The notes below the pieces were generated by a model, which had not been told where the DNA came from, did not search any database, and saw only the letters and a list, made by a program, of their open reading frames with translations. The position numbers and the translations under genes were made by a program. DNA of 64,000 nucleotides, taken from Laetmonice hystrix (lineage: Eukaryota). Position 1 is the first letter of the stretch, and every line of letters begins with the position of its first letter. The stretch spans positions 20,274,001-20,338,000 of the forward strand of contig OZ249451.1 in the NCBI GenBank assembly GCA_965235115.1, in the 5' to 3' direction. Positions 4,415 to 64,000 of this stretch are shown one piece after another.

Positions 4415-5370
4415 AATGTTTATGATAGAATCTAACTGTCCTCGAATATAAACTGTATACTATATAGCTGATATAAATACTGTGTTGGAGTGACAACTCG
4501 AGGGTTGTTCGTAAAAAGTCTACACATTGCTTCAAACCAAGCTGAATCGAGGTGACCCAAAAAGATCCTCGGTCTAACTATACTCTGTTGAGATTTTACA
4601 GTTTACTGTCGTGGTAATGTATAGGTATAGCTGCACAAGTGAAATCATAATTGTGTGGATGGCGAAGTCGAAAACGAAACATGTTATCGCCTCAAAGTGC
4701 GATGGTATAATAATACACGGAACCAACTAACGTTTTGCCCCAGAGCGAGGCTGGCAGGGACGGAAGCGGAAATGCGTAGGTCTTTGCGATTATGTTCTTA
4801 GATCTGCCCAATGGCCGCGCTCGACACAAGCTTGTGTTGGCTGGCCGAACTTTTACCGACCCTCGTAACCGAACTCTAAACTGGACCTGCTGTTTAACTA
4901 GGCTGCTAGAAAATTGTCTCCCTCTTTGACGACACGCCAGTTATGGTGAGTCAACGTTCTGTACCGTATCGTAAACTACGGTTCGAAGTCTCGGACGTCC
5001 GAGAACAGCTAGAGGTGATTGCGAGAAGTCGTGATGGTGATGTGATGAAAGTAACTGCTATTGTGACGTCACATCCTGTATTGTGATGTTAACGCTGGTG
5101 ATTAGATTATGGTGGGTTTTTTTTGCGAAAGAAGTTGTTCACCTATTAATGTAGTTATAGTAGGAAAAGTAAAAAACAAAAACAAGAAAATCTCACGCTT
5201 CCAAGTCGAAATTCTGGTTACCCGGCGTCCAGGCTAGAGGTCCTCAAAACGAGGTCACATGACTTTGTGATAGTAAGTGTTTCATATTGAAAGTAACTTA
5301 TATACCATAGGATGATGTATGACGATGGTGATGAAGATGATAAAACAATGTAACGTTGGTGTCACAGACA

Positions 5371-6372
5371 CTACAGGGACAGGGTAAAACTGGACGCTGA
5401 GGTGAAAAACTGGGACGGAAGACGAGGCAAGCTGAGTTAGAGATGGATAGATTTAATGCTAACATTATATTGTGTGGTATATAAGGTTATGATCTCTGTG
5501 ACAGAAATAGTGTCTTTCCTCTCGTGCATTTCTCTCGATCAGTTGGTTCTAGTGTTTTATCTGACAGAGCACCTATAGGAACAAAATACCTACTCAAGTG
5601 CTAAGGATTGGTTTTGCCCATAGCACCACTTCTGGTCGGAAAAGCATTTATTATTTTTCATTTTTTTTCCACCTCCAGAATTGATTCCGATTGCAGAGGT
5701 TGATTTGGCACATAAAGCCGTCTAAATCAGGCTTACGTCTTGAAGACTATGGTATGACTCGAACGAGACCATTTTAATGTACAGGCACAGAAATGGTCAC
5801 GCATACAGTATAGAGTCCTCGTCCGCAATGGTCGGGACTATAAAACGTTAGAGAACTAAGTCCTACCCTTTGTGGGACTATAATGAGGTTTCAGGGTATA
5901 TAATGAATTTCATGAAGAGGTCATTTACACTATAAAAGATGACGATATCGCAGTTTTGTTTTTCCCTCTGTGTTTTTTAAAAACAATCTTTTTGACATGC
6001 TGACGTTGTGCCGGCAAACAGGGTAGATTGCACGCAACAAGTTGGCAACCAGGGTAACGTTACGCGTGAGAAAATAGTTCTACTGATGAAAAAAAAATCT
6101 ATGTAAACAACACATACCAATACAAATCAACAAATCGTAGACATTGACAATATTTCATCGTATACTTTTTGTGCTATTCATCAAACAATTAGTTTTCCCA
6201 TGATGGGACCCATTTTTTGACTGTAGTTTTTGAATTATTTTGGAGGAGTTTTCTCCTAGTTCATTGTAGACTTGTAGATATATGCATCCCCCGTATCCTC
6301 CCAGCTAACGCAGCTTTGGGGCATCAGAAAAGAAAGTGAGGCACTAAAACGTCAATAGGTACAGTCAGGGTA
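5371..6372 (+). promoter_or_regulatory. cluster of miR-10-family seed-match sites
   Basis: ACAGGGTA at 5379-5386 and 6018-6025; CAGGGTA at 5892-5898, 6050-6056 and 6366-6372; TACAGGGA at 5372-5379. Confidence 0.6.
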
Positions 6373-6872
6373 AAACTCGCCTTCTCAATCTACACGGTGA
6401 AGCGAATTTTGACAATCCACCCAAAGCGTTAGTAACACTCGCCGACCGTTTTTGGTCCGCGGTTTTTGCAACACGCAGCCTGAAGGAAAGGGTAACTTTA
6501 ACTAAGGCTCAAAGGGTACATTTTAATATAGGTAATGATAATATTAATGGCGATGATGATGATGATGATGATAATATGATTGGATGTTTGTAGTCGCTAC
6601 ATAGTTTTCTATATTTATTAACAATGTTGAAAGCTCTTTCGAAGTGGATGTTCGTGTAGTAGCCGGCGATTATAATCCTAGGATGAGTCGGTCTATACCC
6701 ATGTCCCCGGATATTATGTGATGTTGTTGACACCCCTAACGTTTCCACCGTTGTACTTCCCACTTTAACCCAAGGACCGGTATATTCTGCTACAAACTTC
6801 CTCCCGTGTGAAGGACTCCTGTAAAACTCTAGTTCTCCCATGGGACTCGCTGGTCTAGAACTCCTGAAGAAT

Positions 6873-7060
6873 GATATCAGAACCTTTGGAATCAACACTT
6901 GATTTCAAGGATATCAGAGTATTTGGAATCAACACTTGATTTCAAGGATATCAGAGTATTTGGAATCAACACTTGATTTCAAGGATATCAGAGTATTTGG
7001 AATCAACACTTGATTTCAAGGATATCAGAGTATTGGGAATCAACACTTGATTTCAAGGAT
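6873..7060 (+). repeat. 37-bp tandem repeat, 5 copies
   Basis: Unit gatatcagagtatttggaatcaacacttgatttcaag starting at 6873, 6910, 6947, 6984 and 7021. Confidence 0.95.
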
Positions 7061-7182
7061 TTGTTGAAGGACATATAAGTAGATTTTGGTGCTGCTCGAT
7101 GGGCCATATGTATGTTGGTCCCACAAAAAGGTAACAGTAGGGTACGAGAGAAAAACATGTTCAAAGGGTATATTTTATCTCA

Positions 7183-7188
7183 AATAAA
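7183..7188 (+). terminator. candidate polyadenylation signal for Hox5
   Basis: First AATAAA after the Hox5 stop codon; weaker variant hexamers occur earlier. Confidence 0.35.
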
Positions 7189-7620
7189 CGTTCGAGTCAA
7201 GCGAAGCAAATCATATTAGATAAATTGTATCGTAAATAATTTAGCACCACTTTGACACAGCTTTAGGGTTTAGTCTTCATTTCAACTAGGGACGTTAACG
7301 GGGAAAAACCGGGAAAACAACGCACATGTTAACTGAGTTATTTTTGTATGTTTTCAAGTGAATGGGTTCTCTGGCTATAATATGTCTGTGTCCAGATCTT
7401 CCTTGCTCGCATGTAGCCATACTTCAGTGACACTACATGATCATTTTGTACTTCATTGTTGTGATTCGTGTACCGTGGAAGTCGGAGAACTACAGAAGGA
7501 AACGGAATGATTTCGTCTCGGTCGACTTGGACATATATTTGTATGTACATGTATATGCGTCTTGCTCAGAGCGACGTGGAGAATGTAACGCACAGGTTTA
7601 TTGTATTGGTCGTAGAGCTG

Positions 7621-7650
7621 ATGATGATGATGGTGATGATGATGATGATG
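7621..7650 (+). repeat. (GAT)n microsatellite
   Basis: atgatgatgatggtgatgatgatgatgatg. Confidence 0.9.
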
Positions 7651-9433
7651 AAAGAGTATACAAGTATTATTATATACCATACGACAGGCGCGAAGGTCAT
7701 GGTCATTGACATATCTATTAAGATGATGTTGTTGTCGTCCTTAACTATTAATTAACACATTTGCTATACTACAATTTTAAACTGACTGATGATTATATTA
7801 TACTGCCACTTTGGAAGGAGTCGACATGTTCTGCAAATCCTGCAGAAGCAGTACAAATCGTGATTGTGACCCCCCTCCCTCCCAATCAACCCCCTTTTTT
7901 GTCAAAAAGTTTCCCTTTAAACTAAAGACTGTCCTCGCGCGATACCGAAACCCGAGGGTACGTGTGTCTGTGAAAAATGTCTCCCATTGTCAAGTACATA
8001 GCCTGTACATAAATGTAGGTATAGCAGCCCTATGTATTCCTGTTGTATAAAGTTTACAATAAACAGTCATTGCCATAACCTAGAGACTTGTATCATTAGT
8101 AGTAGTAGAACTTGGGTAACATTAGTAGTAGAACTTTGGTATCATTATGCAGTAGTGGTAGACTTTCGTTTTCTCGACACAAAATAACGTTCTGTGAAAT
8201 ATGAAACTATCACAAATATATGTAAGACGTTCCGCTGCCCCCCCCCCCCCCAGCCCAAACGTAAGTGAACACTTCTGAATAATTCTGGACATTTCTGTTA
8301 TCTTTACCGAGGGGGGCTTTGAGGTTTTGTGCTTACCATAATTATTCCTTACTTGTCAAAATGGTCACAAAAAGAAATCAAGTGAAAATACAAATCATCG
8401 GGTCTTTTAATACGTAGGTGTTAAACTCATACATTATGTAAACAGGCGTTTTAACATAGTAACCTACTGGTATTTGGGAAATAATGAGTTTGTGGATGGC
8501 CACCCAAGTTGAAGCTATTTATTAGTATTAGGCCCCTATTTATCGACACTGAAACAAAAGTCAACGGCCTGTTTCTCTTAACAGCTTCAATTTTTTTTGC
8601 ATAATATTCAAATAATTATGCTAAAATATGTAGGGTTGGATTAATCAAAACCCAAGGTGTCAGTACTCACAACTAGTCCAGTATAACTTTTAGAAAACAA
8701 CCCCGACAAAAATACCATCACGAGACAATAAACCCTGTCTGTACCCAGGTTTTCTCAAAGGGGCCCAAGAACTTTTTTGGGGTTCTTTTGTTATGCAAAA
8801 TTTAAAATGAAACCTCTGGCGTTCCATAATAACAGGGTGTTCGACTTAAAATATACAGCTGGCGCAGCAGTGAAAAGACGTTTATAAATAGATGTCCAAC
8901 TGATTTTAACAGTGTTAAGGGTCTAGCATCTCGCTTGTCAGAAACCCTACTGAGAAATTGCACCTTCTTCTTTAGATTTGTTGTTCTATGCAGTCAAAAA
9001 GGTCACAATAATCCATAAAAAAATATTTTACACTTCAGCTTCTTGTCATGAATGAGAGTGGCCACCCGCACCGGCCAATTCTATAATTGTAGGTGTTTTA
9101 CCTGATTATCGTGTTTGTAAAGTCAAGTTTGTAAAACGAAGTTTGTAAAGCGAAGTTTCACCGCCATAGAAAGCGCCATCTCGGTCACCACTTGGTGGAC
9201 GATGACAGAACACCCGCGCCCCCAGTGGCCACTGTGGTAGTAGGCCACCATGGACATGGCGTTCTCAAGACGCTCCGAGATTCCGTGACAAGACTTTCGG
9301 CAACTTACTCAGGCTGGTTTTATTTATTTATTTTTTCTAAATGATTTTTTTTTTTCGATAAAAAAAACATGCTTGGTTAAATAAAATATTAAATGAGAGG
9401 ATGTCAATTCCCACAGAATAACATTTTTTTTCT

Positions 9434-9569
9434 NNNNNNNNNNNNNNNNNNNNNNNNNNNNNNNNNNNNNNNNNNNNNNNNNNNNNNNNNNNNNNNNNNN
9501 NNNNNNNNNNNNNNNNNNNNNNNNNNNNNNNNNNNNNNNNNNNNNNNNNNNNNNNNNNNNNNNNNNNNN
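9434..9569. other. assembly gap (N run)
   Basis: Ns in sequence. Confidence 1.
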
Positions 9570-9666
9570 CCAATGCTTTCCCTTGTCGACTTGTTTTATC
9601 ATTTATGGCATCATATCTGACCCGAAGAAAACGCAAACGATTGGAATCCGTTGCAAGGAAACCGAT

Positions 9667-9799
9667 NNNNNNNNNNNNNNNNNNNNNNNNNNNNNNNNNN
9701 NNNNNNNNNNNNNNNNNNNNNNNNNNNNNNNNNNNNNNNNNNNNNNNNNNNNNNNNNNNNNNNNNNNNNNNNNNNNNNNNNNNNNNNNNNNNNNNNNNN
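9667..9799. other. assembly gap (N run)
   Basis: Ns in sequence. Confidence 1.
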
Positions 9800-10354: not shown

Positions 10355-10472
10355 ATTGGTCAATGTTAGTCACGTGACGAGGAAGGAGGCGGTATTTTGA
10401 TTGGCTGGTTGGGTCGTGGAGGCGTGACGGGCGGGGCGCTGAGAGGTGTGAGTTGTCAGGACGGTTTGACAG
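10355..10472. promoter_or_regulatory. promoter-like module (2x CCAAT, palindromic E-box, GC box, Meis site)
   Basis: ATTGG 10355-10359 and 10400-10404; GTCACGTGAC 10369-10378; GGGCGGGGC 10429-10437; TGACAG 10467-10472. Confidence 0.4.
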
Positions 10473-18801: not shown

Positions 18802-18831
18802 GGGTCATGACCTCCCGCTGACCACTGACCA
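18802..18831. promoter_or_regulatory. composite nuclear-receptor element (IR0 plus imperfect DR5/DR1)
   Basis: GGGTCATGACCT 18802-18813, then cccgc TGACCA c TGACCA. Confidence 0.35.
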
Positions 18832-20067: not shown

Positions 20068-20084
20068 TGACCTGAAGGTGACCT
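20068..20084 (-). promoter_or_regulatory. perfect DR5 nuclear-receptor element (RARE-type)
   Basis: + strand TGACCT gaagg TGACCT = AGGTCA ccttc AGGTCA on the - strand. Confidence 0.5.
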
Positions 20085-21594: not shown

Positions 21595-21736
21595 NNNNNN
21601 NNNNNNNNNNNNNNNNNNNNNNNNNNNNNNNNNNNNNNNNNNNNNNNNNNNNNNNNNNNNNNNNNNNNNNNNNNNNNNNNNNNNNNNNNNNNNNNNNNNN
21701 NNNNNNNNNNNNNNNNNNNNNNNNNNNNNNNNNNNN
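21595..21736. other. assembly gap (N run)
   Basis: Ns in sequence. Confidence 1.
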
Positions 21737-22905
21737 GACAGAGTCCATTTCGAGCACAACTTGTACACTTGCCATAGAGTAGGCCTACGTTAACGTCTTT
21801 AGGCTATACTGATGGAGGGAGGGGGGGGAGGTAAACTTAATTTGCATGTAACTGAGTGCCTTTAATCCATGGATATTTGCTGTGAATTTTAAAATACCAC
21901 AACCGAGAAGAATGTTCCGGGTATTTTCTGAACCAAGGCATATTTTGTCGATTTAATTTTGTTTAAACCTCTGTTGCCTGTCATATATGTCGATTCGATA
22001 TTCACGGACTACAGACGGTATCGTTCAGCAGATTTAAGCCTGGGTTAGAACTCATCTATAATTCAACGTGGAAGAAGCATTTGTTTGCTTTGTGGCAGCG
22101 CTGAAGCGGGGAGGGAGGGTGAGGGTGAGGAGGGAGGGTGGGAGGGTGGGGCGGGAAGGGAGGGAAACGCCATCAATCAGCCATCGTGCTCGCACTGCCT
22201 CCAACACCCTGCTCAATCTCCCATGCAAAGCGCGAACTGCTCCGAAACGGAGCTCTATCGTGATTGGAGTGGGCTCCTTCCACAGATTGGCGGCTGCTAT
22301 GTAATTATGGAAACCTTCTGTCCCCAGGATTTATCCCATCCTGTTATTCATCCCCCGCCCGTGTTCATACTAGAGTTTTTGTTAATTTTTCCCTCGATAT
22401 TTCAAGCCGTTCAGAGAGCAAGGTATGGCCTGCGTTATCTCATGAATATGACGTCTTGATCTCAGTAGATAGTAAACGACAGAAATGATTTGAACAGACA
22501 TGGAGAAAATGAATAGAATTAAAATTACGCCACCAAAAAGTGTTCCGATGAGGCCAAGGTTAGGCAGGCCTGTTCCGTACAACATCACATTCAGAGGGAA
22601 ACAGCAAACGAAAAAGGTTTCACAGCCTTCCGCCATGAATAATATCTGCACTAATTGGGGCTAAGTAATTGGCACAGTCACTTGCTACCTCCACCCAATC
22701 AGGATCTGATATTGAATAGCGTTGTTCTAATGTGTCAAACATTATGATCAAGGACAATGAGGGCAGAAAAAAACATTTACACCTTCTCGTCGTGTAACAG
22801 AAACAACTGTTCCCTAGTGTAGACTGATTCAGTATAATCAACCTGGTATCATGGTAGTACATATAGTATCATGGTAGTACATATATCTGTATACATGTAC
22901 ATTGT

Positions 22906-23886
22906 ATCTGGTATAACTGCCACCATAAGTTATGGTACTACATATCTGTAGACATGTATCTGGTATAACGGCCACCATAAGTTATGGTACTACATATCTG
23001 TAGACATGTATCTGGTATAACGGCCACCATAAGTTATGGTACTACATATCTGTAGACATGTATCTGGTATAACGGCCACCATAAGTTATGGTACTACATA
23101 TCTGTAGACATGTATCTGGTATAACGGCCACCATAAGTTATGGTACTACATATCTGTAGACATGTATCTGGTATAACGGCCACCATAAGTTATGGTACTA
23201 CATATCTGTAGACATGTATCTGGTATAACGGCCACCATAAGTTATGGTACTACATATATGTAGACATGTATCTGGTATAACGGCCACCATAAGTTATGGT
23301 ACTACATATCTGTAGACATGTATCTGGTATAACGGCCACCATAAGTTATGGTACCTCATATAGGTAGACATGTATCTGGTATAACGACCACCATAAGTTA
23401 TGGTACTACATATCTGTAGACATGTATCTGGTATAACGGCCACCATAAGTTATGGTACTACATATCTGTAGACATGTATCTGGTATAACGGCCACCATAA
23501 GTTATGGTACTACATATCTGTAGACATGTATCTGGTATAACGGCCACCATAAGTTATGGTACTACATATCTGTAGACATGTATCTGGTATAACGGCCACC
23601 ATAAGTTATGGTACTACATATCTGTAGACATGTATCTGGTATAACGGCCACCATAAGTTATGGTACTACATATCTGTAGACATGTATCTGGTATAACGGC
23701 CACCATAAGTTATGGTACTACATATCTGTAGACATGTATCTGGTATAACGGCCACCATAAGTTATGGTACCTCATATAGGTAGACATGTATCTGGTATAA
23801 CGGCCACCATAAGTTATGGTACTACATATCTGTAGACATGTATCTGGTATAACGGCCACCATAAGTTATGGTACTACATATCTGTA
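22906..23886 (+). repeat. 52-bp minisatellite, ~19 near-identical copies
   Basis: Unit gtataacggccaccataagttatggtactacatatctgtagacatgtatctg. Confidence 0.97.
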
Positions 23887-24930
23887 GTGATGAAAGGTAT
23901 CAACATAATCCTCTTACGTCTCTGTATATGTTTACATTTATACATTTATCTACATTCATACACAGCTTGCGACCACGTGTGACAACTATATGCCTCAAGG
24001 ACCATGAAACCATTTGTTGTGGTATTTCTCATGTGTCTCGCCGTAGGGACACACTCAGGCTTAGTTCTTCTATTATTATTTATTCCCTAACCCACCCCCA
24101 CCCCCACCCCCACCCCCACCCGCCTCAGAATATCTGTTTACCTTGGGCATTCATATAGGATGCTGGGATAATAAGAGCTGATCCATCAAAGCACTGCCTC
24201 TTTCTGGAGTGGTCGGTGGGCTGACGGGTATTTTGAAGAACGACTCGAGTCTTGTGACACTGTCCCCTTCTCGGGATGCGACCACAGGCAAGCTGTCCAA
24301 CTCCACGACCATAAATGATGGATTTCGTCTTTAAATATTTCAAGCACCATTCATCATCGTTCATAGCGGTCTAATATAGATGTAGATGTCTGTTATTTGA
24401 CAATTTATCGTTTGATAAAAAAGATTATATAAATAAAACATGTACATTATATAGATAGGACTCTACGATGTTGTATAAGTTATATTTAACGGTGACTCCG
24501 TGGTGTGTCGGGGGACGGGGTTGTATTAAGTAGACGAGGTTGGGTTGAGAGCGCTGCCACACACCTGTCCCAAAGGTTGACCACTACCGATCGGTGATCT
24601 AATCCTCTAAGGGAGATCGATGTTGATCGATGAGGTTGTCCCTGGCAGCGGCGGCGACGGCGGCCAGTGACTGCCGGGGGACGTGGGAGGGGGTGGCCGG
24701 GCGGGTTGTGCCCCCCACCCCCGGCCCCACCCCGGCGCTGTCAACCCACCCGCCCGTCTGTCCGGTTGTCCGGCTGTCCACCCACCTCCAGTAATACAGG
24801 CTCACTGTCACATCCACCTCCAGCGCGAGCCCAGCCTGGAGACAGCCGCTATCCTCATCATGATCTGAGACCACCCTGGAGAATCACCCTCCTGTCTCTC
24901 TCCATCTCCGCTCTCCCCGCCAACCCTAGC

Positions 24931-29346: not shown

Positions 29347-29380
29347 TGACCCCGTGACCTTTGCCATCTGACCTCTGTCA
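29347..29380 (-). promoter_or_regulatory. DR2 plus DR8 nuclear-receptor half-site triplet with adjacent Meis site
   Basis: + strand TGACCC cg TGACCT ttgccatc TGACCT, then CTGTCA (TGACAG on the - strand). Confidence 0.4.
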
Positions 29381-30311: not shown

Positions 30312-30328
30312 AGGTCAATGTGAGGTCA
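30312..30328 (+). promoter_or_regulatory. perfect DR5 nuclear-receptor element (RARE-type)
   Basis: AGGTCA atgtg AGGTCA. Confidence 0.5.
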
Positions 30329-31209: not shown

Positions 31210-34200
31210 ACCTTCTCCGCCTTGTCTGGTACTGAGAGGACAGCTATTGGCGTGTTTAAACCCGGAATTAAAGCGGGCAGGGCTTTGGTCCGGTGTGACC
31301 GACCTGTGCGGAACTTTCTGAGGGAAGGATTTGGTGGAGAAAAGGGGCCTTTTGACGGATCCGATATCTTGGTGGTACATTCGGAAGTGGGGCCTTTCAA
31401 TCGGGACGGGAACCGGGGGGATCGTGATCAGTAACAGTCAGCTATGCATATTTATGAGAGTTGTGGGGTTGCAGGGGAGTGTTTGCAAGTCGGTATCAGG
31501 TTTACTTTGACTATCTTGGAGCTTTGCCCTCCTTTCGTCCTCCTTTCGTCCTCCTTTCGCCCTCCTTTCCTGGGCTCCTTGAGGAGAACTGCTCGGGGCC
31601 TTTGAGCGCATCGATTTGGGTTTATCTTTGATTGCATTGGGGTTCTCGGGCCTTGAGGAACGCTCCTCGGGGTCAGTAGGCGGGGCGAGGCGCGGGTTGG
31701 GGAGGGGGGTTGGGGTTTGAGGGAGACGGGTTGTGACGGGAGGGAGGAACCCCAGGTTCCGGGGTACGGGTCACAGTACCCCCGGCTCCGGCGGCGTCGG
31801 TCTGCCCAGGGACTGGTGGCTAGGTCAACAGCCGGCCGCTCAGCTCAACCCCCCTCCCCCTTCCCTTACCCCCTCCCCCCAGCCGAGCTCATGGTTGGCG
31901 CTCACGTAATCCCACCACCGAGCTGCACGATGCTCCTGGCCACTGATGCTGGAACCATCGACCCTGCGGCTTAATATGAAAGGCCCTAGCCGATTGGGAT
32001 TAACGCGATGGCCGGGGTCGGTGCTGAGGAATTGCCTTGCACCGGCTTGAACCCCCTCACCACAACCCCCCCCCCCCACCCGATTCTCTCTCAGTCTCCC
32101 GCTGCAGAGCAATGGTGAAGGGGTTTAGGGTACGGGGCTCCTGGGCCGCCTGGGGCGAGGTGAGGGGTCGACTTTTATAGCTCGGCCACAAATCACATTT
32201 TGCACCACGTTGCACCATGTGTAATAGACTGAGGTTGGGGGAACACCCGCGTGACAGCAGGGAGGGGGTGGAGAAACTGGGTGGTGGGGGTGGACGGAGA
32301 GGGGTTCGGTGTATGATGAGGGGTGTTTTGGTACTTCGTGAGCGTTGACTTTCTATTTGCTCGCTGTGATATGTCATGTTCATTTCATGTTCTGAAAATA
32401 TTTACTTTTTCAGCAACAAAAAAACAACCAAAAATCCCCCCAAAACATGCCGATAAGGAACGACTTGTCGGCCCAAGAAGAACGATGCATTTGTTTATGA
32501 GTGAGAGGCAGAAACAGATTTTGTAGAAAACATTTCAGTAAAGTTTTTATTCGTTGCGTCAGTGAAAGGATATACTATATTATGTCCTTTCTGATTCTAC
32601 ACTTGATACTTTAGCCCTGGAATACAACAACTAGAGTTCTGAGTGAACTGTTCATGTTGGGATGACGCAGACAGAAATTATTTTAAACTCCCCTGCATGC
32701 GTGTAGTTCTTTATAAAAAAAAAGTATTTTAAAAAAGTGCAAGCCCTGAGCACTGGCAGTAGCTAGGTTAGCATCAGCGACTTGTCATCAAACAAATTGA
32801 CGTTCACGTCATATCTCTGTCGGCGGTTCTAACAACGAATAAACTCTTCCGTCGCCAACGACAACCGGAAACGCGTTTCAAGTTGGTTTTCTCGCAGGAT
32901 CTCGCCGTCGGCGGGTTTTCCGCCTACACCCTGCCAGATCTCCCATGCCCTGTCTTTTTTTTTCTTTGGTATCTACCAGCAATTGGCAGTCGTAATAAGA
33001 GTGCCGCTTACCCCTCGACAGAGGATCGCTCGATCATTTTGATATAACGAAATACATGTGTTAGGAATCTGTGGTAGGGCAAGGTACTGAGTTCGTCTGC
33101 CAACCAACTGACGTGAAAATATAGACATGTCTCGCTGCGTATTTTGTATGAGTGAAACGCCAGTTATTACCAGTCCAAGATTATCATTTAAATAGATCGT
33201 GGCCGTTTGGACATTGAGTCAGGTGACAAAGATATGTCTTGTGTGATGCGAACGAAATAAAAATTGTGGTACGGTTTGTGTGCTTTCTGCGAAAAACAAA
33301 CAAAACTATGAAACGTTTACTTAATTTCAATGTAGTTTTCTGTAAGTCGGCATTGTATTATCTGTTATTTGGGGCTGGAGGTTAAGAAGTTAATGTAATA
33401 GCTTATCCAATGTGACTTATCCCAAACCACTCATTGTTGAAACTATTATTTCCGTGCAATGTGCGAACATAGTTTCCCTGAAAACAGAACTGCGTCCCCT
33501 CCCCGTCCTGGGTGAGGGGGTTTAGTCGGGTTGGAGGTCATCCTGGTCAGGGTAGAGTTCCGTTGTCGTTCACGATCAGTTATCCCTTCACATGTTGACC
33601 TCAGGTCACTTTGAAATCCGTTTGACTGACAGCGTCTACGAACGGAACTCCCATAATTTTCCGTATGGACATTTCGCCTCAAAGTCTTCTTTCTGTCTAC
33701 ACAGTCGTCATGGCTCTTCCCTCCTCTCACAGAACATTAAACACCCCTCTGTTCTTACAACCCCTAGCTTCAACCCCTCCCCCTTCACCGCAGAAAGTCA
33801 AAGCGGGGCCTTTTCTCTAGTTAGATAAAGACATGCTCCTGGGATTACAACACGATTGATCAGAAGAGTTGGGTTTAAGAAAGAGGAACATTTCGGACTA
33901 ATTGGGCGCTGTTTGAGCTCGATCTGTTGAAAGAGCTCCCTGGTTGATTCCTCAAGAGGAAATACCTCGGAACTGGCGGCAATGTGAGGTCCCAGCGAGA
34001 CAAGCGAGTCAAAGTGTGCGTTCGCTTCTGTCTGCTCCTATTTATCAATGTCTTAAACACCATGCTTGTTAGCTTAATTCTACGTCGTTTCTACTTCGTC
34101 ATCGGTTTGTGTTCCCAACAAACGAATTGCTCAAAAAGTTTGTCTTGCCATGTAGAGAGGTATATCTCAGATGAAGCAAACTTAGCCCGACCATGTACCA

Positions 34201-46100: not shown

Positions 46101-46189
46101 CTATAGGGGGCGGGGTTTGTGTGGGGATTTCGTCCAGGTTCGATCCACACTGATCGGTATCAGGAATTAGGAGGTCGGACCTTGAGCTG

Positions 46190-53942: not shown

Positions 53943-54074
53943 GGACCCTTTGAACCTGTGAACTGTCTGCCTTCGTGAACCCCTGGTCCAACGATTTGTT
54001 AGGGTACAATATGAACGATGAAACAGAGCGTGAAAAAAAATCATGGCTATTGGAGGTCATGGGGTCATATAAAA
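53943..54074. promoter_or_regulatory. two DR2 nuclear-receptor elements plus TATA-like motif
   Basis: TGAACC tg TGAACT 53951-53964 (DR2, - strand); AGGTCA tg GGGTCA 54054-54067 (DR2, + strand); TATAAAA 54068-54074. Confidence 0.4.
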
Positions 54075-54084
54075 CGGGAACCTG

Positions 54085-54098
54085 CCGCTAGGGGGCGA
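54085..54098 (+). promoter_or_regulatory. CTCF motif
   Basis: CCGCTAGGGGGCG matches the core CCRSYAGRKGGCR fully. Confidence 0.55.
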
Positions 54099-54121
54099 GC
54101 ATGGCGTATTGTTCATTATTG

Positions 54122-54896
54122 AATCTTAGATCACGATCAGTGGATGACCTTCATGTACAATCTTAGATCACGATCAGTGGATGACCTTCATGTACAATCT
54201 TAGATCACGATCAGTGGATGACCTTCATGTACAATCTTAGATCACGATCAGTGGATGACCTTCATGTACAATCTTAGATCACGATCAGTGGATGACCTTG
54301 ATGTACAATCTTAGATCACGATCAGTGGATGACCTTGATGTACAATCTTAGATCACGATCAGTGGATGACCTTGATGTACAATCTTAGATCACGATCAGT
54401 GGATGACCTTCATGTACAATCATAGATCACGATCAGTGGATGACCTTCATGTACAATCATAGATCACGATCAGTGGATGACCTTCATGTACAATCATAGA
54501 TCACGATCAGTGGATGACCTTCATGTACAATCTTAGATCACGATCAATGGATGACCTTCATGTACAATCTTAGATCACGATCAGTGGATGACCTTCATGT
54601 ACTGAATCGTAGATCACGATCAGTGGATGACCTTCATGTACAATCTTAGATCACGATCAGTGGATGACCTTCATGTACAATCTTAGATCACGATCAGTGG
54701 ATGACCTTCATGTACAATCTTAGATCACGATCAGTAAATGACCTTCATGTACAATCTTAGATCACGATCAGTAAATGACCTTCATGTACAATCTTAGATC
54801 ACGATCAGTAAATGACCTTCATGTACAATCTTAGATCACGATCAGTGGATGACCTTCATGTACAATCTTAGATCACGATCAGTGGATGACCTTCAT
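54122..54896 (+). repeat. 37-bp minisatellite, ~21 copies
   Basis: Unit aatcttagatcacgatcagtggatgaccttcatgtac. Confidence 0.97.
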
Positions 54897-57437
54897 TGGT
54901 GTTAGCCGAGCAGGGTCTGTGGTTGTAGTTACTGACTGCCAGGCCGGGTTTGGAGTTAGCCGAGCAGGGTCTGTGGTTGTAGTTACTGACTGCCAGGCCG
55001 GGTTTGGTGTTAGTCGAGCAGGGTCTGTGGTTGTAGTTACTGACTGCCAGGCCGGGTTTGGTGTTAGCCGAGCAGGGTCTGTGGTTGTAGTTACTGACTG
55101 CCAGGCCGGGTTTGGTGTTAGCCGAGCAGGGTCTGTGGTTGTAGTTACTGACTGCCAGGCCGGGTTTGGTGTTAGCCGAGCAGGGTCTGTGGTTGTAGTT
55201 ACTGACTGCCAGGCCGGGTTTGGTGTTAGCCGAGCAGGGTCTGTGGTTGTAGTTACTGACTGCCAGGCCGGGTTTGGAGTTAGCCGAGCAGGGTCTGTGG
55301 TTGTAGTTACTGACTGCCAGGCCGGGTTTGGTGTTAGTCGAGCAGGGTCTGTGGTTGTAGTTACTGACTGCCAGGCCGGGTTTGGTGTTAGCCGAGCAGG
55401 GTCTGTGGTTGTAGTTACTGACTGCCAGGCCGGGTTTGGTGTTAGCCGAGCAGTGTCTGTGGTTGTAGTTACTGACTGCCAGGCCGGGGTTGGTGTTAGC
55501 CGAGCAGGGTCTGTGGTTGTAGTTACTGACCGCCTGGCCGGGTTTGGTGTTAGCCGAGCAGGGTGTGGTTGTAGTTACTGACTGCCAGGGTTTGGTGTTA
55601 GCCGAGCAGGGTCTGTGGTTGTAGTTACTGACTGCCAGGCCGGGTTTGGTGTTAGCCGAGCAGGGTCTGTGGTTGTAGTTACTGACCGCCTGGCCGGGTT
55701 TGGTGTTAGCCGAGCAGGGTGTGGTTGTAGATACTTTACTGACTGCCAGGCCGGGTTTGGTGTTAGCTGAGCAGGGTGTGGTTGTAGTTACTGACTGCCA
55801 GGCTGGGTTTGGTGTTAGCCGAGCAGGGTCTGTGGTTGTAGTTACTGACTGCCAGGCCGGGTTTGGTGTTAGCCGAGCAGGGTGTGGTTGTAGTTACTGA
55901 CTGCCAGGCCGGGTTTGGTGTTAGCCGAGCAGGGTCTGTGGTTGTAGTTACTGACTGCCAGGCCGGGGTTGGTGTTAGCCGAGCAGGGTCTGTGGTTGTA
56001 GTTACTGACTGCCAGGCCGGGTTTGGTGTTAGCCGAGCAGGGTCTGTGGTTGTAGTTACTGACTGCCAGGCAGGGTTTGGTGTTAGCCGAGCAGGGTCTG
56101 TGGTTGTAGTTACTGACTACCAGGCAGGGTTTGGTGTTAGCCGAGCAGGGTCTGTGGTTGTAGTTACTGACTGCAAAGGCCGGGTTTGGTGTTAGCCGAG
56201 CAGGGTCTGTGGTTGTAGTTACCGACTGCCAGGCCGGGTTTGGTGTTAGCCGAGCAGGGTGTGGTTGTAGTTACTGACTGCCAGGCTGGGTTTGGTGTTA
56301 GCCGAGCAAGGTGTGGTTGTAGTTACTGACTGCCAGGCCGGGTTTGGTGTTAGCCGAGCAGTGTCTGTGGTTGTAGTTACTGACTGCCAGGGTTTGGTGT
56401 TAGCCGAGCAGGGTCTGTGGTTGTAGTTACTGACTGCCAGGCCGGGTTTGGTGTTAGCCGAGCAGGGTCTGTGGTTGTAGTTACTGACTGCCAGGCCGGG
56501 TTTGGTGTTAGCCGAGCAGGGTCTGTGGTTGTAGTTACTGACTGCCAGGCCGGGTTTGGTGTTAGCTGAGCAGGGTGTGGTTGTAGTCACTGACTGCCAG
56601 GCCGGGTTTGGTGTTAGCCGAGCAGTGTCTGTGGTTGTAGTTACTGACTGCCAGGGTTTGGTGTTAGCCGAGCAGGGTCTGTGGTTGTAGTTACTGACTG
56701 CCTGGCCGGGTTTGGTGTTAGCCGAGCAGGGTCTGTGGTTGTAGTTACTGACTGCCAGGCCGGGTTTGGTGTTAGCCGAGCAGGGTCTGTGGTTGTAGTT
56801 ACTGACTGCCAGGCCGGGTTTGGTGTTAGGCGAGCAGGGTCTGTGGTTGTAGTTACTGACTGCCAGGCCGGGTTTGGTGTTAGCCGAGCAGGGTCTGTGG
56901 TTGTAGTTACTGACTGCCAGGCCGGGGTTGGTGTTAGCCGAGCAGGGTCTGTGGTTGTAGTTACTGACTGCCTGGCCGGGTTTGGTGTTAGCCGAGCAGG
57001 GTCTGTGGTTGTAGTTACTGACTGCCAGGCCGGGTTTGGTGTTAGCCGAGCAGTGTCTGTGGTTGTAGTTACTGACTGCCAGGCCGGGTTTGGTGTTAGC
57101 CGAGCAGGGTCTGTGGTTGTAGTTACTGACTGCCAGGCCGGGTTTGGTGTTAGCCGAGCAGGGTGTGGTTGTAGTTACTGACTGCCAGGCCGGGTTTGGT
57201 GTTAGCCGAGCAGGGTGTGGTTGTAGTTACTGACTGCCAGGCAGGGTTTGGTGTTAGCCGAGCAGGGTCTGTGGTTGTAGTTACTGACTGCCAGGCCGGG
57301 TTTGGTGTTAGCCGAGCAGTCTGTGGTTGTAGTTACTGACTGCCAGGCCGGGTTTAGTGTTAGCCGAGCAGGGTCTGTGGTTGTAGTTACTGACTGCTAG
57401 GCCGGGTTTGGTGTTAGCCAAGCAGGGTGTGGTTGTA
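54897..57437 (+). repeat. 54-bp minisatellite, ~47 copies
   Basis: Unit gttagccgagcagggtctgtggttgtagttactgactgccaggccgggtttggt, with 52- and 49-bp variants. Confidence 0.98.
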
Positions 57438-58318
57438 CAGAAACAGGTGCAGAGACACGCTGCTAGAACTACATTGTATCTGAAAAAGCCTCTCGTTGAC
57501 GTAATGATCGCTGGGATATAGCACTATGAAATCCTTTGAACGACAGTGCTGCCACCTGGCATGTAATGATGCGACAAGCTGGAGCGCCTAGCTACATGCA
57601 CATTATGTCATTAATCGCGAATGATATATTGGAGGTGATAATTATGTAGTAACCAGAAGTGTCATGGTATACCAAGTTGTGTTATTCAATCGATTACCAC
57701 CAAATGTGACCGTACTTTGTCGTTTGAAGCTACTGGCTCTCAATATATGTGTCGATATTTCTTTTCCATGAATGATATACCATCTAAACTAGCAGATGTG
57801 TTCTAACGCGGAAAGGGATATCTTATTGCAGTTGCAGATAGAGTAATTTTGAAATGAACCACAGACTTGCAATGGTTGCGTGTGATTTAATTATTGTAAG
57901 TAGTGGAGAGCACTGATTGAAACGAAACGTGACTGTAGAAACGTAAGCACGGTCCGTCCCTATTGAATGCGAGTATAATTAATGGGAACAGCGTGGCTGG
58001 ATTGAGGGAACAGTACAATGTGGTGGATTGTTTGTGATATTTATTACAATTAATTGGGGTTGTATCGGTTGGAAGAGCTGAGAGGGTATGGGGGAGACAG
58101 TTGACGGGTTCGGCTGGGGGTGGGGGTGGGGGTGGGGGTGATAGCATGCGGGAATGCATGCTACACTGAAGGCATATCCCCTAATTTCATATTGCACCTC
58201 ATTCACCACTAAAGTGATTACCTCCTAGAGGGGGGCTGACAATGGGAATGTATGGGTGGCCAGTGATTTCTTCTGAATGAGTTGCCCAGATTGACCAGCG
58301 GTTGCCCTCAACTTCTGT

Positions 58319-58330
58319 CCACTAGAGGGC
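58319..58330 (+). promoter_or_regulatory. CTCF motif
   Basis: (TGT)CCACTAGAGGGC matches the 12-nt core fully. Confidence 0.5.
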
Positions 58331-61300
58331 TACGTTTGATTTATTGTTTAATCTACGGTCAGTTTATTGTCGGGAAAATTCCTGATTTCACGTGCCCTCA
58401 CCCCCACCCCCTACCACCACCCTGACGTGATTTCAGGATTACATATAGGCAGAAATAAATGGAACACGAACCGCAGGGATGAAATTGATGAATATCTTTG
58501 TAAATTGATTCGCACGCCGTAACCCTTTCTGCGGTCCACCGAAGTACTATAAGACAGGGTGGCCTCCCAACCCCTCCCTCAACAGCTGAGGTATTCATGT
58601 GGGGCGTGCATACAACCCCCCTGCTGCGAGGAACAGAGGGATGCTTTAGTATCACCCCCCTCTGATGTGGCGCTATTACAGAGGGAGAGTAAACACACCG
58701 TAACAGATTGTTGTAGGTCAGACTTAGTGAGGCAGGGCGCGCGCTGGCTACAGTAGCGACACCTAGCTACGAGCACCGCCTTTCATCATCACACACCGCC
58801 AGTCGGGACGTTTTGAAGCGTGCCCAGACGGGCACAGTTTGCGCCAACCTGACTGTCATTTGTAACTGATGACTAGGTTGTATCCTGTGTGTGTGTTGAC
58901 ACAGGCTATACGACCAGCTGATGCTGGATGTAACCCACTGTGCACCCCATCAATGGCAACCACTGTTATATCTTCAGGAATATGACAGTAGACGCCATTG
59001 TAGAACCAGTGTCGTCAGCAGGGCCTCGTTAACTCTTCCCAGGGTCTTAATGTATGGACACATGTACGCACACATGTACGCACACAGGTCACACAGCATT
59101 TTGTGTGATCTTTTATGGGGAACCAAAGACGGAGGTGGAGACAGGGGGTATTACAATTAAGCTTGAGGTTTTTGCAACTAAAAAAAATCTAAATGGGTTA
59201 ATTTTACCCATGAGTCGATTGTGCAATATTTCATGATGGGCCCGCCATGACCCTGACAGAGAAAAAGATAGAAAACACCTTTTCTGAATTACTAAAAGTA
59301 GGCCAAAAGCTAAGCAATTTCGACCGAGGCTCTAATAGCCCATAGCGATAATTAAGTTGTATTCACCGAAAAAAAATTAACCTTATATTCCCACTGTTTA
59401 ACCTCTCCTATAAATAGGTCATTAAGTCGGCCAGTATTTAATATGATATTTTTTACCACTAGCTTCAGGGCACAGACATTCACGCACCCACCGTGCCACA
59501 GCCCCATGTTTGACGTGGCGTTGGTTCGGGCGGGCAGACCGAGAGAAAGTCGTCATAAACCTGTCATGTTCCGACCTAACCTAGCCCAGGATCGGTACTA
59601 TTCACGGTGCTTGATTTACTACTCAGTCCTATTGAGGGACGTGGCCCAATTATCGCCCACCTAGTGTTAGTAGGGCACTGTGTAAATGAATCCAAGCTTT
59701 CGTCATTTCAGCTGTGACCGATATAAAAAATGTGGGGCGATACCACACCGGTCGAGCTATGAGGCTATTTATAGAGGGGAAATTATAGGTGATATATTGT
59801 ATGACGTTTTGTCAACAGGGCTAGGGATTCTAGTCCTACAGTCCTACAATACATGAAAGGGGGGTTAGAATACCCGGGGGGGGGGGGGGGGGGTCCTCAG
59901 TGGCATCGATTGCAAGAGAAAGAAAAAATAATTTCTTTTTAAACAAAAAAGAGAGAGATTTTCTATTGGGGATGGCTGCATGGGAGAAAAATAAAGTGGT
60001 TTTGTCGAGGCACAAATTTGTGGGAGAGAAAATGTCAGGAGGCACCTCCCCCTGCCCCCTATACGGGCCGGTTCTCACAGGAGCCATAAACGCCGACATC
60101 TGGGAATGTGGGAGAGCAACCTGATACCAGTGGTAATCGAAGCCGTAGGGGGTTGTCAGAGATCCCGGGTGGGGTGTAAACTGGTGGTGGCGGGTTAACT
60201 CTTCAAAGAACCCCATGAAGCCGCCACCACGGCATATATGTATATATTAGAGAGAGAACTAGGTACAGCTGACCTTGGGATACATGTGTATGTCGTCATG
60301 TCAGATGGAGGCCGTATAGGTCGACACAGACCTAGATAAACGGGAGGCTTCAGGAGATGAAGTGAATAGTTGGAATCGCAGTTTATAAGATATTATGTAA
60401 ACTATAATGATCCTTATTGAATCCAAGTATACCACAATTAACGACCAAAATATAATTTTGTAAGCGGTGAGATAGTTTGGTCTCGGAGGGGTAACAATAA
60501 TTACATGGTCAAGAATGAATCTTATCTGGACTAAGTCGGATCGAAATAGTTTATTTCAATAAAATACAGTCGGTGGCATGTTTGTAATAATACACGTATT
60601 ATCTCTTCCCGGGTGTGGGTGTAGGTGTGGGTGGGGGTGTGGGTGTGGGTGTGTTGTGGGGTAAAAAGTAATGAGGGAACCGCGGAGGCATTCGAACCAT
60701 ATGACCATATAATGTTTGGTCATCAACACTGTACTCGAGGGTGTAGCCGGTCAGTTACTGACCACTGAGTGACCAACACCCCTGCAACCATCTCTGGGGG
60801 TCCGCGGGGGTAAGGAGTTAGGTCTAGAGACTTATCAAATGAGAAAGGGTAAGAGGACTTAGGTCTAGAGAAGGGGTAGAGTAAGCATTTAGGTCTAATA
60901 GGGAAATTGATTATCTAAAATCTAGGTCTACGGAAATCAGTCCATGAGATGCAATTGGAACAAACGGGGAAGACGAAATCAATGTTAGATAATTAATTTT
61001 ATTCATCATTTGACAAGTTTGACATGGTTGATGCAGACAAATTAATGATGAATAAAATGGAGTATCTAACATTCGGATTTCGTCCTCACCGTTGGTTCCA
61101 ACTGCATCTCATGCACTGCTTTTTGTGCCCGTTGGCTTGGCCCCAGGCTGTATATTTGGGCCGTGGAAGGAAAACAATAATAAGACAATTTAGGAAATTG
61201 ACACACCTTTGAAAAGAGGAGGTTTTGACCTATCAGATACACTTGGTAACTAATATCTAGTTAGTATAATTTTCTAACAAAATGATAATATTTCAGAATT

Positions 61301-61536
61301 TCGTTTTTTTATGAGACGCCTAGCTGTATATATTCCCATAAAACCTGATATTATATGTTTCAAAAGATTCTAATATTTTACGAAAGGTAAACAGACCTCC
61401 GAGTCGTTTTACAGATCACCTCGGATATAGAAAATATCTTTTTAATTTTGAAGATTATAGATAAAAAACAACACTCTTGCAGTGAGGCGTTACGTTCGTG
61501 CATTGCCAGGACTGTTGTCCTGACGACGGCTCCGAG

Positions 61537-61564
61537 GCGCCACCTCGCGGGCACCAGAGGGCGC
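61537..61564. promoter_or_regulatory. back-to-back divergent CTCF motif pair
   Basis: - strand CCGCGAGGTGGCGC (61537-61550) abutting + strand GCACCAGAGGGCGC (61551-61564); each is 13/14 to CCRSYAGRKGGCRS. Confidence 0.5.
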
Positions 61565-63482
61565 AGCGGTGCTGTGTGAGCGGCTCGGTTCTTGGTGCCA
61601 CGAGTAAATGGCCTGCTTTGATGGCATCCTCCCTCCTACTCTTCAAACCAATGTTTACTGGCCATGTCCTTGACAATTACTAGTGGATCCACTCTCAGAA
61701 ACTGCATGCCGTGATTCCGTTGTTGTGGGAGAAACTTGTATAGACCTTATAGGATGGCAAGATTTGATCTAGGCCTCTGAGATTGACCCCCGGCTATATT
61801 TTATTTTTCTCCCTCTAACTCTTGGCCTATTTTCTGTCTCTCGTCTGAGGCATTTGAATACTTTGAATGGAATGCAGGAACTTCCATTCAAATACGTCCG
61901 CGTTGGTTACCAAAGGTGTCAGTCAACTAATAAAGTCACTGAACTTCTTATTGCCTTGAAAGTTTTACAACAGCGCGTCAACGTTTTATAGACCTGCTTA
62001 GTGTGCTATTTATAGAAGGTGACGTCCCAGTTCCGGATGCTGGGTTCGTCTGCTATAGAGGACATTTCGGGGGCAAGGACAAATTTACATAAAACATCGA
62101 AAAAGTCAAGAATTGTGTTTTGTAGGGTCATATATTCTAGTCTGTACGTTACACGATGGGCAGTAATGTTATAAGTACACCTTTACACATTGGGTAATGT
62201 CGTGCCTTCTTAAAACTTGTACCAGTCTACACCTTAGGGATGACTTAGGGTTTCCAAGTGTGCATGTATAGGCCTCCATTAGTTCGGTGCCCATGTCCTT
62301 TGTGGTGGGACTTGAGAAGCTCTGATAAACTTTTGGCAGTAGATAAAGCTTTAAAACGTTTGGAGTATTGGGGAAAGAATTGGAAAAGAGTTCTTTGAAT
62401 TTTAGGGATTTTTAGATTTGTTTGTTTGTTTTCAATAAAGAAACCCGTCCATATTGGTTAAAGTTAAGTCGAGCAAGCATTTATGGTAAGAAAGTTATGT
62501 TTCGAAGTTTGGAGTATCAATTCCTGTTTTATAACCTAAACCTTAATGATATATGAACTAAATCGGGTTTTATAAATACCTTGAAGCTTGACTCCGTTGG
62601 AGATGTTCTTGGTTAGAGCAAAGGTATAATATGGGCAATGAACCCAGACTCCCAGGGCAAAGATATGTGTCATGCTATACGTCACTGTTGAACAACGACT
62701 ATATGTACATGCAGTAATGAGGGGACATCAAACCCTAACCGTTTCAACACAATTTGTATAGTTTTTGTCCGTAAGAAAAGCTATCGGGCGAAACGGTCAC
62801 AGCCACGGGCCGAGCGTTTTGTCACACCGTGAGAAAGTTTAGCGATCTGTTGGGCGAGACAGGTGTCTGTATACAAGGACGGATGGGGGGGGGGGGTGTG
62901 GGCCCCTCTTTTGGCCAGAATAACCTATTTGCTGCGATTGACCTATTTCCGTTGCGTACCCGAATACTAATGTTAAAGTTCCATTACAACAACAACGATA
63001 TTTTGTCGTCTATAGTACGGATTCCTTTTCATGAGACGACGCCTTGTGAAAGCTGTCAAAAGTCGTCTGCTACTCTGAGTGCTTCCGTCACGACAGCAGA
63101 TCGGAAACTGAAAATGTACATTGCACAATTGTTCGAGACTCAACCCACTCGAGTCGTAGTTCGCCGCTGCTCAAGGTTAGGGGTCGAACTATATCAACAG
63201 AGGAGGACGATTTTCTGAATAAATTCCCTGGCTCCAATTTCTCCGTAAAAATAATCTGGCTCCATCTGTGGTTGAAAATAATATATAGATACTACATACA
63301 TATAATCGTATAATACATTTTTTTTTTTTTTTTTTTTTGGGGGGGGGGGGGGTCGGCTTTTGGGGGTTACCCTGATGAACGGGAAATCACAGCATGCATG
63401 GAGACAGATGGGCAGGCACGGCGGGCAGGGGGCTAGGGTCCCATAATTTTAACAGGTAGAGTCCGGCGAAAGAACGAAAAAC

Positions 63483-63513
63483 GAAAGAAAGAAAGAAAGA
63501 AAGAAAGAAAGAA
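63483..63513 (+). repeat. (GAAA)n microsatellite
   Basis: gaaagaaagaaagaaag run. Confidence 0.9.
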
Positions 63514-63560
63514 ATAACTGGGAAACGCCATCAAAAATGAAGGAAAACCAGATTCTGACT

Positions 63561-63652
63561 TTACGTCATGACATTACGTCATAACATAACCCCCCTTCAA
63601 AAAGCAGGATCCGCCCCTGCTGTGTGTGTATTTCAAGTTATTTTTGATTGAT
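63561..63652. promoter_or_regulatory. two CRE/ATF-like sites, GC box and Pbx-Hox site
   Basis: TTACGTCA 63561-63568 and 63574-63581; CCGCCCC 63611-63617; TGATTGAT 63645-63652. Confidence 0.3.
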
Positions 63653-64000
63653 TCTCCTACTATACCTTTTCCAAAGGATAAATGTTTTATTTTAATAGGT
63701 GTTTTGTCAGGGTAAAGAAATTAAAAACGAATATTAGGCCTACCCAAAAACAGAGGGGGTGGGGGTTAATGCCAGCCCCTTTAGGCTTACATAATGTGTG
63801 TTTCTTAACTTGAGTGACCAGTAACCGCACATTACTTACTTCATGGAAACAAGTAGATCTACATGTATAACACTTGACTAAAACCCACCCTTAGTTTTGA
63901 TATAGGCACCTGAAAGTAGATTTTAAAAAGTTATAGATCCCTATGCCCAAGTGTGCATAGTAACTTCGTTTTGACTCGTATGAATGGATTTTGCCCACTG

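Follow-up and report, generated by a model that had tools for sequence, protein, structure and literature searches.

A miR-10-family site cluster downstream of annelid Hox5, among nuclear-receptor and CTCF-like motifs at background level

Hox5 and its transcribed 3' region

The DNA studied here is a 64,000-nucleotide stretch of the Laetmonice hystrix genome (G000:C21:20274001-20338000), hereafter the window, whose own coordinates are used below unless stated. It carries the 3' part of a Hox5 gene, followed by a cluster of sequences matching the seed of miR-10-family microRNAs (miRNAs). By placing the window in the surrounding Hox cluster, which covers ~1.1 Mb and has all its homeoboxes on the + strand, we found that it represents the first ~60 kb of the ~102 kb intergenic desert separating Hox5 from Hox4 in an annelid Hox cluster. 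The sole homeobox of the window (4154-4324; Pfam Homeodomain, E=2.6e-24) belongs to exon 2 of a Hox5 (Scr-type) gene (4131..4414, + strand), identified by Pfam, an RNA contig and a tail match. This exon encodes the homeodomain, the C-terminal tail and the stop codon, and its acceptor AG ends at 4130. Exon 1 (MSSYFVNS...QIYPWMRRMHSGN), which carries IYPWMRRMH, precedes exon 2 by ~14 kb and is therefore not part of the window. Among named proteins, exon 1 is closest to Hox5 of Alitta virens, the tail of which (KLGHLAKSQ...DMDRKS) is close to the one encoded here (KLAHLAKSQ...DMDRKS), and exon 2 matches brachiopod, mollusc and arthropod genes that bear the name Scr or Hox5. The homeodomain, the YPWM motif and the group-specific flanks are all present, Hox4 is adjacent in the cluster and mir-10 lies between both. 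Indeed, the next downstream gene has Hox4/Dfd signatures (MSSFLMNS, VIYPWMKRVH, YTRHQILELEKEF and KLPNTK); it occupies 106377-110868, beyond the window end, with its start codon at ~106,377, ~102 kb downstream of Hox5. The preliminary description of this DNA, which had seen in it a lophotrochozoan Hox5 downstream interval, was therefore right on the identity of the locus.

Contigs assembled from run X4 gave the apparent extent of the Hox5 transcript. They do not cover the intron at 3401-4000, cover 4130 to ~7924 and are absent again at 8001-9000, and one of them joins the end of exon 1 (translated PWMRRMHSGN) to exon 2 at 4130/4131. Since X4 contigs spliced from exon 1 span 4130 to ~7924, the miR-10 sites described below are within a transcribed 3' untranslated region (3'UTR) of ~3.5 kb (4415..7930, + strand, as covered by X4; its end is approximate). 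A separate X4 contig of low depth was found at 9026-9300, ~1 kb past the apparent 3'UTR end and directly before the first assembly gap.

miR-10-family sites and miRNA genes

In total, the ~3.5 kb of the Hox5 3'UTR contain six 7-8-mer seed matches and nine AGGGTA cores. These matches fit two forms of the miRNA, as a miR-10 product that starts one base earlier at its 5' end has the seed UACCCUG, which pairs with CAGGGTAA as an 8mer and with AGGGTAA as a 7mer-A1 site. The seed UACCCUG is also that of arthropod miR-993-5p. The first match, ACAGGGTAA (5379..5387, +), is an 8mer for canonical miR-10 as well as for the 5'-shifted seed. The next three all fall in the X4 contig 5878-6135: CAGGGTA (5892..5898, +) is a 7mer-A1 site for the canonical and a 7mer-m8 site for the shifted seed, ACAGGGTA (6018..6025, +) is a canonical 8mer, and CAGGGTAA (6050..6057, +) is an 8mer for the shifted seed and a 7mer-A1 for the canonical one. 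A second CAGGGTAA, with the same two readings, stands at 6366..6373 (+) in the X4 contig 6275-6538, and the sixth match, AGGGTAA (6489..6495, +), is a 7mer-A1 site for the shifted seed only. Additional AGGGTA cores were found at 6513, 7139 and 7165. The preliminary description had reported miR-10 seed sites behind the Hox5 stop; we could confirm them on the + strand at 5379, 5892, 6018, 6050 and 6366, and they are both transcribed and recurrent in other species.

We compared this cluster with what the genome produces by chance. First, five of the 15 sense miR-10 sites of the window are packed within 1 kb (scan p=7e-4). Second, CAGGGTA or AGGGTAA occurs at six sites in the 3 kb after Hox5, where the genome-wide frequency predicts 0.33 (P=1.3e-6), and the antisense strand of the same 3 kb has zero miR-10-family sites. 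Third, the sole comparable cluster of sites in the background is a tandem repeat, whereas the sites of the Hox5 3'UTR are outside any repeat. Hox4 of the same genome has no miR-10-family site in 3.1 kb. Among the classes of motif put forward in the preliminary description, only the miR-10 cluster exceeds chance.

The genome also encodes miRNAs of this family within the Hox cluster. A canonical mir-10 hairpin with the mature sequence UACCCUGUAGAUCCGAAUUUGUG lies at 68220-68292 on the + strand (C21:20342220-20342292; L002:1501-1573), that is 4.2 kb past the window end, between Hox5 and Hox4 and ~62 kb downstream of the Hox5 sites. Its score, 44.4 bits, is slightly below the Rfam gathering score of 47.5. 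An Rfam search of the window itself gave nothing at the gathering score, mir-10 being just outside. Two weaker miR-10-family hairpin matches are located in the posterior half of the Hox cluster, one of 34.7 bits (C21:19914249-19914318; L003:1501-1570), whose mature-like UACCCUGUAGAACCGAGCGAGUG has the same seed and another 3' half, and one of 34 bits (C21:19731709-19731776). A mir-100-like hairpin at C19:15212998 matches on both strands. The position of mir-10 between Hox4 and Hox5 is the general bilaterian arrangement (PMC3290615). According to the Platynereis genome paper, annelid Hox clusters have mir-10 between Hox genes and contain several Mir-10 paralogues, one of them seed-shifted; a seed shift is known there for the lophotrochozoan paralogue Mir-10-P5 (PMC12257675).

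We then looked at three orthologous Hox5 loci (L034, L035 and L036), with homeodomains identical or near-identical to the present one and a similar AHLAK tail motif. L034 has three sense sites at +2301 to +2535 from the Hox5 stop and none else in 20 kb on both strands, L035 has seven sense sites at +680 to +5578, and L036 has four AGGGTAA at +1710 to +2444. The Hox5 UTRs of these species are no longer alignable, yet the cluster recurs in several annelid-type genomes. Over the four Hox5 orthologues, CAGGGTAA is the first of 65,536 8-mer-defined site families (6, 3, 7 and 4 sites), with zero counts in all four species both antisense and in the upstream 3 kb. A ranking of 5,440 shared 7-mers put CAGGGTA at the top. 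Canonical miR-10 7-8-mers occur in three of the four species, and the lack of the canonical 8mer ACAGGGTA in L036 leaves it no higher than rank 1,262. In Lottia (L037, +1568) and Batillaria (L039, +1650), one CAGGGTA each is present ~1.6 kb after the Hox5 stop; judged by its sequence and position, this lone CAGGGTA may be a conserved miR-10-family site in molluscs.

The enrichment of AGGGTA(A)/CAGGGTA could be real and nevertheless be read by an RNA-binding protein, by another small RNA or as a DNA-level element. That the shared core is AGGGTAA rather than the canonical ACAGGGT, with ACAGGGTA so low in the ranking, would agree with such a reader, as would the miR-10-5p:Scr interaction predicted in Drosophila, which has no visible effect in the embryo (PMC3290615). 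However, a miR-10 product shifted by one base 5', as described for a lophotrochozoan Mir-10 paralogue (PMC12257675), would have precisely this motif as its 7mer-A1, 7mer-m8 or 8mer site, and canonical 7-8-mers are found too in three of the four species. In addition, the strict limit to the sense strand (antisense counts are 0 in all four) fits a signal at the RNA level, and the miRNA genes sit within the same cluster. We thus consider a reader other than miR-10 unlikely. A U1 or 5' splice-site word (CAGGTAAG) behind the AGGGTAA core was also considered and rejected, as it is absent from the top shared words.

Several observations speak against a conserved repression of Hox5 by miR-10-family miRNAs. 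On the transcript side, run X4 bears no RNA label on record and was taken as RNA from its behaviour alone, its contigs fix neither transcript continuity nor strand nor the exact 3' end, and canonical AATAAA signals are present at 7183 and 8058 only, with none at the apparent end of the 3'UTR. On the comparative side, L034-L036 are classed as annelid-type by the Hox5 tail alone, L036 has AGGGTAA only and no canonical miR-10 7-mers, and three gastropod Hox5 loci have 0-2 sites; the miR-10 cluster is therefore not lophotrochozoan-wide. On the functional side, no embryonic effect of the predicted miR-10-5p:Scr interaction is detectable in Drosophila (PMC3290615). At the locus itself we found sense-strand 7-8-mers, a transcribed 3'UTR, a miRNA gene in the genome, and a statistical excess together with recurrence in orthologues. 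Taking these sites, their transcription, the miRNA gene, the excess and the recurrence together, we regard the miR-10 seed matches of Hox5 as real and under selection.

Half-site pairs and CTCF-like cores against the genome background

The interval downstream of Hox5 also contains paired nuclear-receptor half-sites. Two perfect direct repeats with a spacing of five (DR5; AGGTCA n5 AGGTCA) are located at 20068..20084 (-), with a third TGACCT ~45 bp further (~20129), and at 30312..30328 (+), with single-copy flanks. Direct repeats with a spacing of two (DR2) were found at 29347-29360, within a group of three co-oriented half-sites (DR2 + DR8; 29347..29374, -), at 53951-53964 (-) and at 54054-54067 (+), shortly before a CTCF-like core and a minisatellite bearing TGACCT. 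In addition, there is an inverted repeat without spacer (IR0, GGGTCATGACCT) at 18802..18813 and an everted repeat with a spacer of one (ER1, TGACCTCAGGTCA) at 33596..33608. The group of three half-sites, the IR0 and the ER1 are each at chance level. The two perfect DR5, the IR0 and the ER1 had all been listed in the preliminary description and are indeed in the sequence; the three DR2 that it had called consensus exist as RGKTCA-type repeats, and none of them is a perfect AGGTCA pair.

To put these numbers in context, expected values per 63.4 kb window were taken from genome-wide counts, with nominal P values that ignore that an IR0 or an ER1 would also have counted. Perfect AGGTCA DR5 occur 3,105 times in the genome, giving 0.31 expected against 2 observed (P=0.04 for at least two), which means that at least two of them are expected in ~4% of the 64 kb windows into which the genome can be cut. 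RGKTCA DR5 (9,928 in the genome) are expected once (1.0) and were observed twice (P=0.27), RGKTCA DR2 (4,080) are expected 0.41 times and were observed three times (P=0.009 for at least three), and DR2 and DR5 together (14,008) are expected 1.4 times and were observed five times (nominal P=0.015). When every direct, inverted or everted arrangement with a spacing of 0-8 was counted, the 63.4 kb of the window yielded 9 degenerate pairs and 4 perfect ones; the corresponding numbers were 20 and 6 for 190 kb of random DNA (19 pieces of 10 kb) and 15 and 1 for 70 kb of flanking Hox DNA. With all spacings and orientations allowed, there is thus no excess of half-site pairs in the window over background. 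Nor do they cluster significantly between 18.8 and 33.6 kb (scan p=0.11-0.26), and a single 37 bp minisatellite supplies 21 of the 62 AGGTCA half-sites. Genome-wide, perfect DR5 are ~6 times commoner than the reversed control. One perfect DR5, AGGTCACACAGAGGTCA, recurs many times in the genome (for example at G000:C1:1899885, 4013557 and 4102684), which suggests a dispersed repeat inflating the genome-wide DR5 count.

Two results do not favour chance as the source of these pairs: the excess, mild as it is, of DR2 alone (3 vs 0.41) and of DR2 plus DR5 (5 vs 1.4), and the rejection of a transposon origin for the two perfect DR5, whose 400-base flanks are single copy. The abundant transposon that the preliminary description had envisaged as a possible carrier of AGGTCA repeats does not account for these two elements.

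Retinoic acid response elements (RAREs) of vertebrate Hox clusters are DR5 and DR2 elements near Hox1, Hox4 and Hox5 paralogues that are conserved across species, bound by RAR/RXR and needed for the response to retinoic acid (RA). The pairs found here have the same sequence form, that is RGKTCA direct repeats spaced by 2 or 5 in Hox intergenic DNA. They differ in their background density, and the hox1/hox4 boundaries of an annelid are insensitive to RA (PMC5821490). Direct RGKTCA repeats of spacing 1, 2 or 5 are present, with neither an excess over the background nor conservation in the orthologous DNA compared. In six orthologous loci (three annelid-type and three gastropod), no DR2 or DR5 was found in the ~10 kb downstream of each Hox5. 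Moreover, when the window was compared by blastn with L031-L035, of which L031-L033 are exon 1 loci that stop short of exon 2, only the homeobox exon and low-complexity DNA aligned, the non-coding DNA being unalignable.

Some of the DR5 and DR2 (20068, 30312, 29347 and 54054) could still be true response elements for RAR/RXR, RXR homodimers or COUP-TF, providing an input to Hox5, mir-10 or Hox4. Both perfect DR5 stand in single-copy DNA, the combined DR2 and DR5 count has a nominal P of 0.015, two of the elements have a third co-oriented half-site nearby, and the RAR/RXR of the annelid Platynereis binds DR1, DR2 and DR5 in vitro (PMC5821490). However, the excess vanishes once all acceptable spacings count, RGKTCA DR5 alone are unremarkable (P=0.27), the pairs are not significantly clustered, ~4% of 64 kb windows would hold at least two perfect DR5 anyway, and the six orthologous loci lack both repeats in the ~10 kb behind Hox5. 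Experiments on related animals point the same way. In Platynereis, the neuroectodermal hox1 and hox4 boundaries are unchanged by RA and hox1 expression is unchanged by a rar morpholino, in a study that left out Hox5 and whose authors place RA control of Hox genes at the base of chordates (PMC5821490). In oyster, all-trans retinoic acid (atRA) gave no induction of hox genes (bioRxiv 10.1101/2025.03.09.642214). We therefore regard true response elements as very unlikely here. Should the single-copy DR5 and DR2 be enhancers bound by nuclear receptors, to which we give a very small chance, this input to the Hox cluster would be pre-chordate or convergent, despite the negative Platynereis hox1/hox4 result. 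In all, with every spacing and orientation allowed, the DR5, DR2, IR0 and ER1 pairs are the chance yield of 63 kb of this genome. The nuclear-receptor input to the interval proposed in the preliminary description is thus unsupported, given the density and clustering at background level, the absence from the orthologous loci and the negative annelid experiments.

A similar picture emerged for CTCF. We scored the window with a position weight matrix (PWM; maximum 27.2 bits) that is a hand-written approximation of JASPAR MA0139.1 and not a matrix of this species, which counts against our reading of the scores that follow. CTCF-like cores were found at 54082..54100 (+, 15.6 of 27.2 bits) and 58316..58334 (+, 15.3 bits), and two overlapping divergent cores at 61535..61566, with 14.0 bits on the - strand and 18.5 bits on the + strand (61548). 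The latter two overlap head to head in a GC-rich near-palindrome (GCGCCACCTCGCGGGCACCAGAGGGCGC). These four top PWM matches of the window (14.0-18.5 bits) are all within its last 10 kb, and no match to the 15-mer consensus CCASYAGRKGGCRSY was found in the window with up to one mismatch. Random DNA has 25 matches of at least 14 bits in 190 kb (mean 1.3 per 10 kb, range 0-4), so that the last 10 kb, with 4, are within this range and the whole window has 4 against ~8 expected. Because they score 14.0-18.5 of 27.2 bits, lack a consensus match and occur at background density, these cores are neither strong nor unusual: of the four strong CTCF cores reported beforehand for the last 10 kb, the number and the place stand and the strength does not.

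The genome as a whole is rich in the motif. We counted 6,943 copies of the consensus CCASYAGRKGGCRSY, ~0.7 per window and ~85 times as many as of its reversed control (82); their degenerate positions are diverse, so they are not one repeat family. The genome thus seems to carry a large population of real CTCF-type sites. One of them, TGACCAGCAGGGGGCGCTG, reaches 25.3 of 27.2 bits on the - strand at ~105,456 (L010:1456-1474), 0.9 kb upstream of the Hox4 start codon, and is the sole consensus-grade CTCF site in the entire Hox5-Hox4 interval; between 64 and 114 kb, three matches of at least 14 bits were found, all on the - strand. In the annelid Dimorphilus gyrociliatus, most active CTCF motifs occur singly and are located at promoters (PMC7854359), with which the position of TGACCAGCAGGGGGCGCTG agrees. 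The two annelids also have in common a vertebrate-like motif that is prominent in the genome. The cores of our window differ from the Dimorphilus motifs in being intergenic and below consensus.

Might the four cores at 54-62 kb nonetheless form a working CTCF boundary before mir-10, parting the Hox5 side from the mir-10/Hox4 side? The four best PWM matches do lie in the last 10 kb, 6-14 kb before mir-10, and the genome clearly uses a vertebrate-like CTCF motif. Their scores of 14-18.5 of 27.2 bits, with none within one mismatch of the 15-mer consensus, argue against it, as do the 0-4 such matches (mean 1.3) in random 10 kb pieces and the post hoc choice of the 10 kb sub-window; furthermore, the promoter placement in Dimorphilus fits the 25.3-bit site before Hox4 and not these cores (PMC7854359). 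We consider such a boundary highly improbable. The CTCF component of the preliminary description is likewise unsupported: its cores are weak and at background density, and in another annelid CTCF motifs are mostly found at promoters (PMC7854359).

The remainder of the window is devoid of recognizable genes. Between 8 and 64 kb, the open reading frames of 140 aa or more either run through minisatellites or lack a Pfam match, and this part is therefore a gene desert. Tandem repeats (minisatellites) make up ~21% of the window, with arrays of 52 bp x 19 (22903-23887), 13 bp x 239 (25663-28655), 31 bp x 58 (39287-41037), 37 bp x 21 carrying TGACCT (54122-54896) and 54 bp x 47 (54896-57437); these arrays supply most CAGGGT 6-mers beyond the Hox5 3'UTR. 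Assembly gaps at 9434-9569, 9667-9799 and 21595-21736 overlap no motif and no 3'UTR feature. Independent short-read contigs likewise end at ~9265-9308, shortly before the first gap. As continuity across this gap is unproven, the distance between the Hox5 stop and any feature past 9.4 kb is an approximation.

A probable protostome miR-10-Hox5 link

The preliminary description had brought all these motifs together as a chordate-like regulatory layout. The miR-10 sites and mir-10 itself are indeed in the Hox5-Hox4 interval, but this arrangement is bilaterian or protostome, with a counterpart in the arthropod miR-10-5p:Scr pair (PMC3290615), and the retinoid and CTCF parts are at chance. We consider it likely that the layout is a composite of three unrelated things, and that its miR-10 component reflects a conserved repression of annelid Hox5 through several sites for this miRNA family.

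Arthropods offer the nearest parallel, a predicted and conserved miR-10-5p:Scr target interaction (Lemons, Pare & McGinnis 2012, PMC3290615). It involves the same miRNA family and the same Hox5/Scr group, with mir-10 between Hox4 and Hox5, and there too the sites are conserved amid an otherwise unalignable 3'UTR. In arthropods, however, a single site combines a short seed with extended 3' pairing, whereas the annelid has six 7-8-mer sites (nine cores) with turnover between species and a shared core that fits the 5'-shifted seed. In vertebrates, miR-10 represses HoxB1a and HoxB3a (Woltering & Durston 2008, PMC2148072), that is, a Hox-cluster miR-10 acts on 3'UTR seed sites in Hox genes of the same cluster, as predicted here. 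The genes repressed in vertebrates, paralogues of Hox1 and Hox3, are located 3' (anterior) of the miRNA, whereas the predicted target here is Hox5, the opposite neighbour of mir-10, and Hox4 has no sites in its 3.1 kb. Finally, the present cluster resembles the one with the Mir-10-P1 paralogues and the seed-shifted Mir-10-P5 of Platynereis (PMC12257675) in having several miR-10-family hairpins, and its top conserved site word CAGGGTAA would pair as an 8mer with a one-base-5' product such as Mir-10-P5. The Platynereis paper describes the miRNA genes, and the passages of it that we searched contain no Hox5 target sites.

How the sites would work can be proposed from these sequences: we infer binding, repression and the acting isoform as follows. 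Argonaute loaded with miR-10 would bind the sites of the Hox5 3'UTR cooperatively. Either the canonical UACCCUGUAG... form or a paralogue shifted by one base 5' (seed UACCCUG, Mir-10-P5/miR-993 type) could act in this way, or the two together. Wherever the miRNA is expressed, the bound Hox5 mRNA would be less stable and less translated, and this repression may sharpen or buffer the Hox5 domain.

The annelid multi-site Hox5 cluster extends the miR-10-Hox link known from arthropods, and this link is protostome or bilaterian, not chordate-like. A chordate-style retinoid and CTCF wiring of a worm Hox cluster fails against the genome's own background. Together, the annelid cluster and the arthropod miR-10-5p:Scr prediction suggest that the miR-10-Hox5 link is old in protostomes. 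The Hox5 sites also suggest a concrete target for the seed-shifted annelid miR-10 paralogue, and the function of Hox-cluster miRNAs thereby becomes testable in Platynereis or Capitella.

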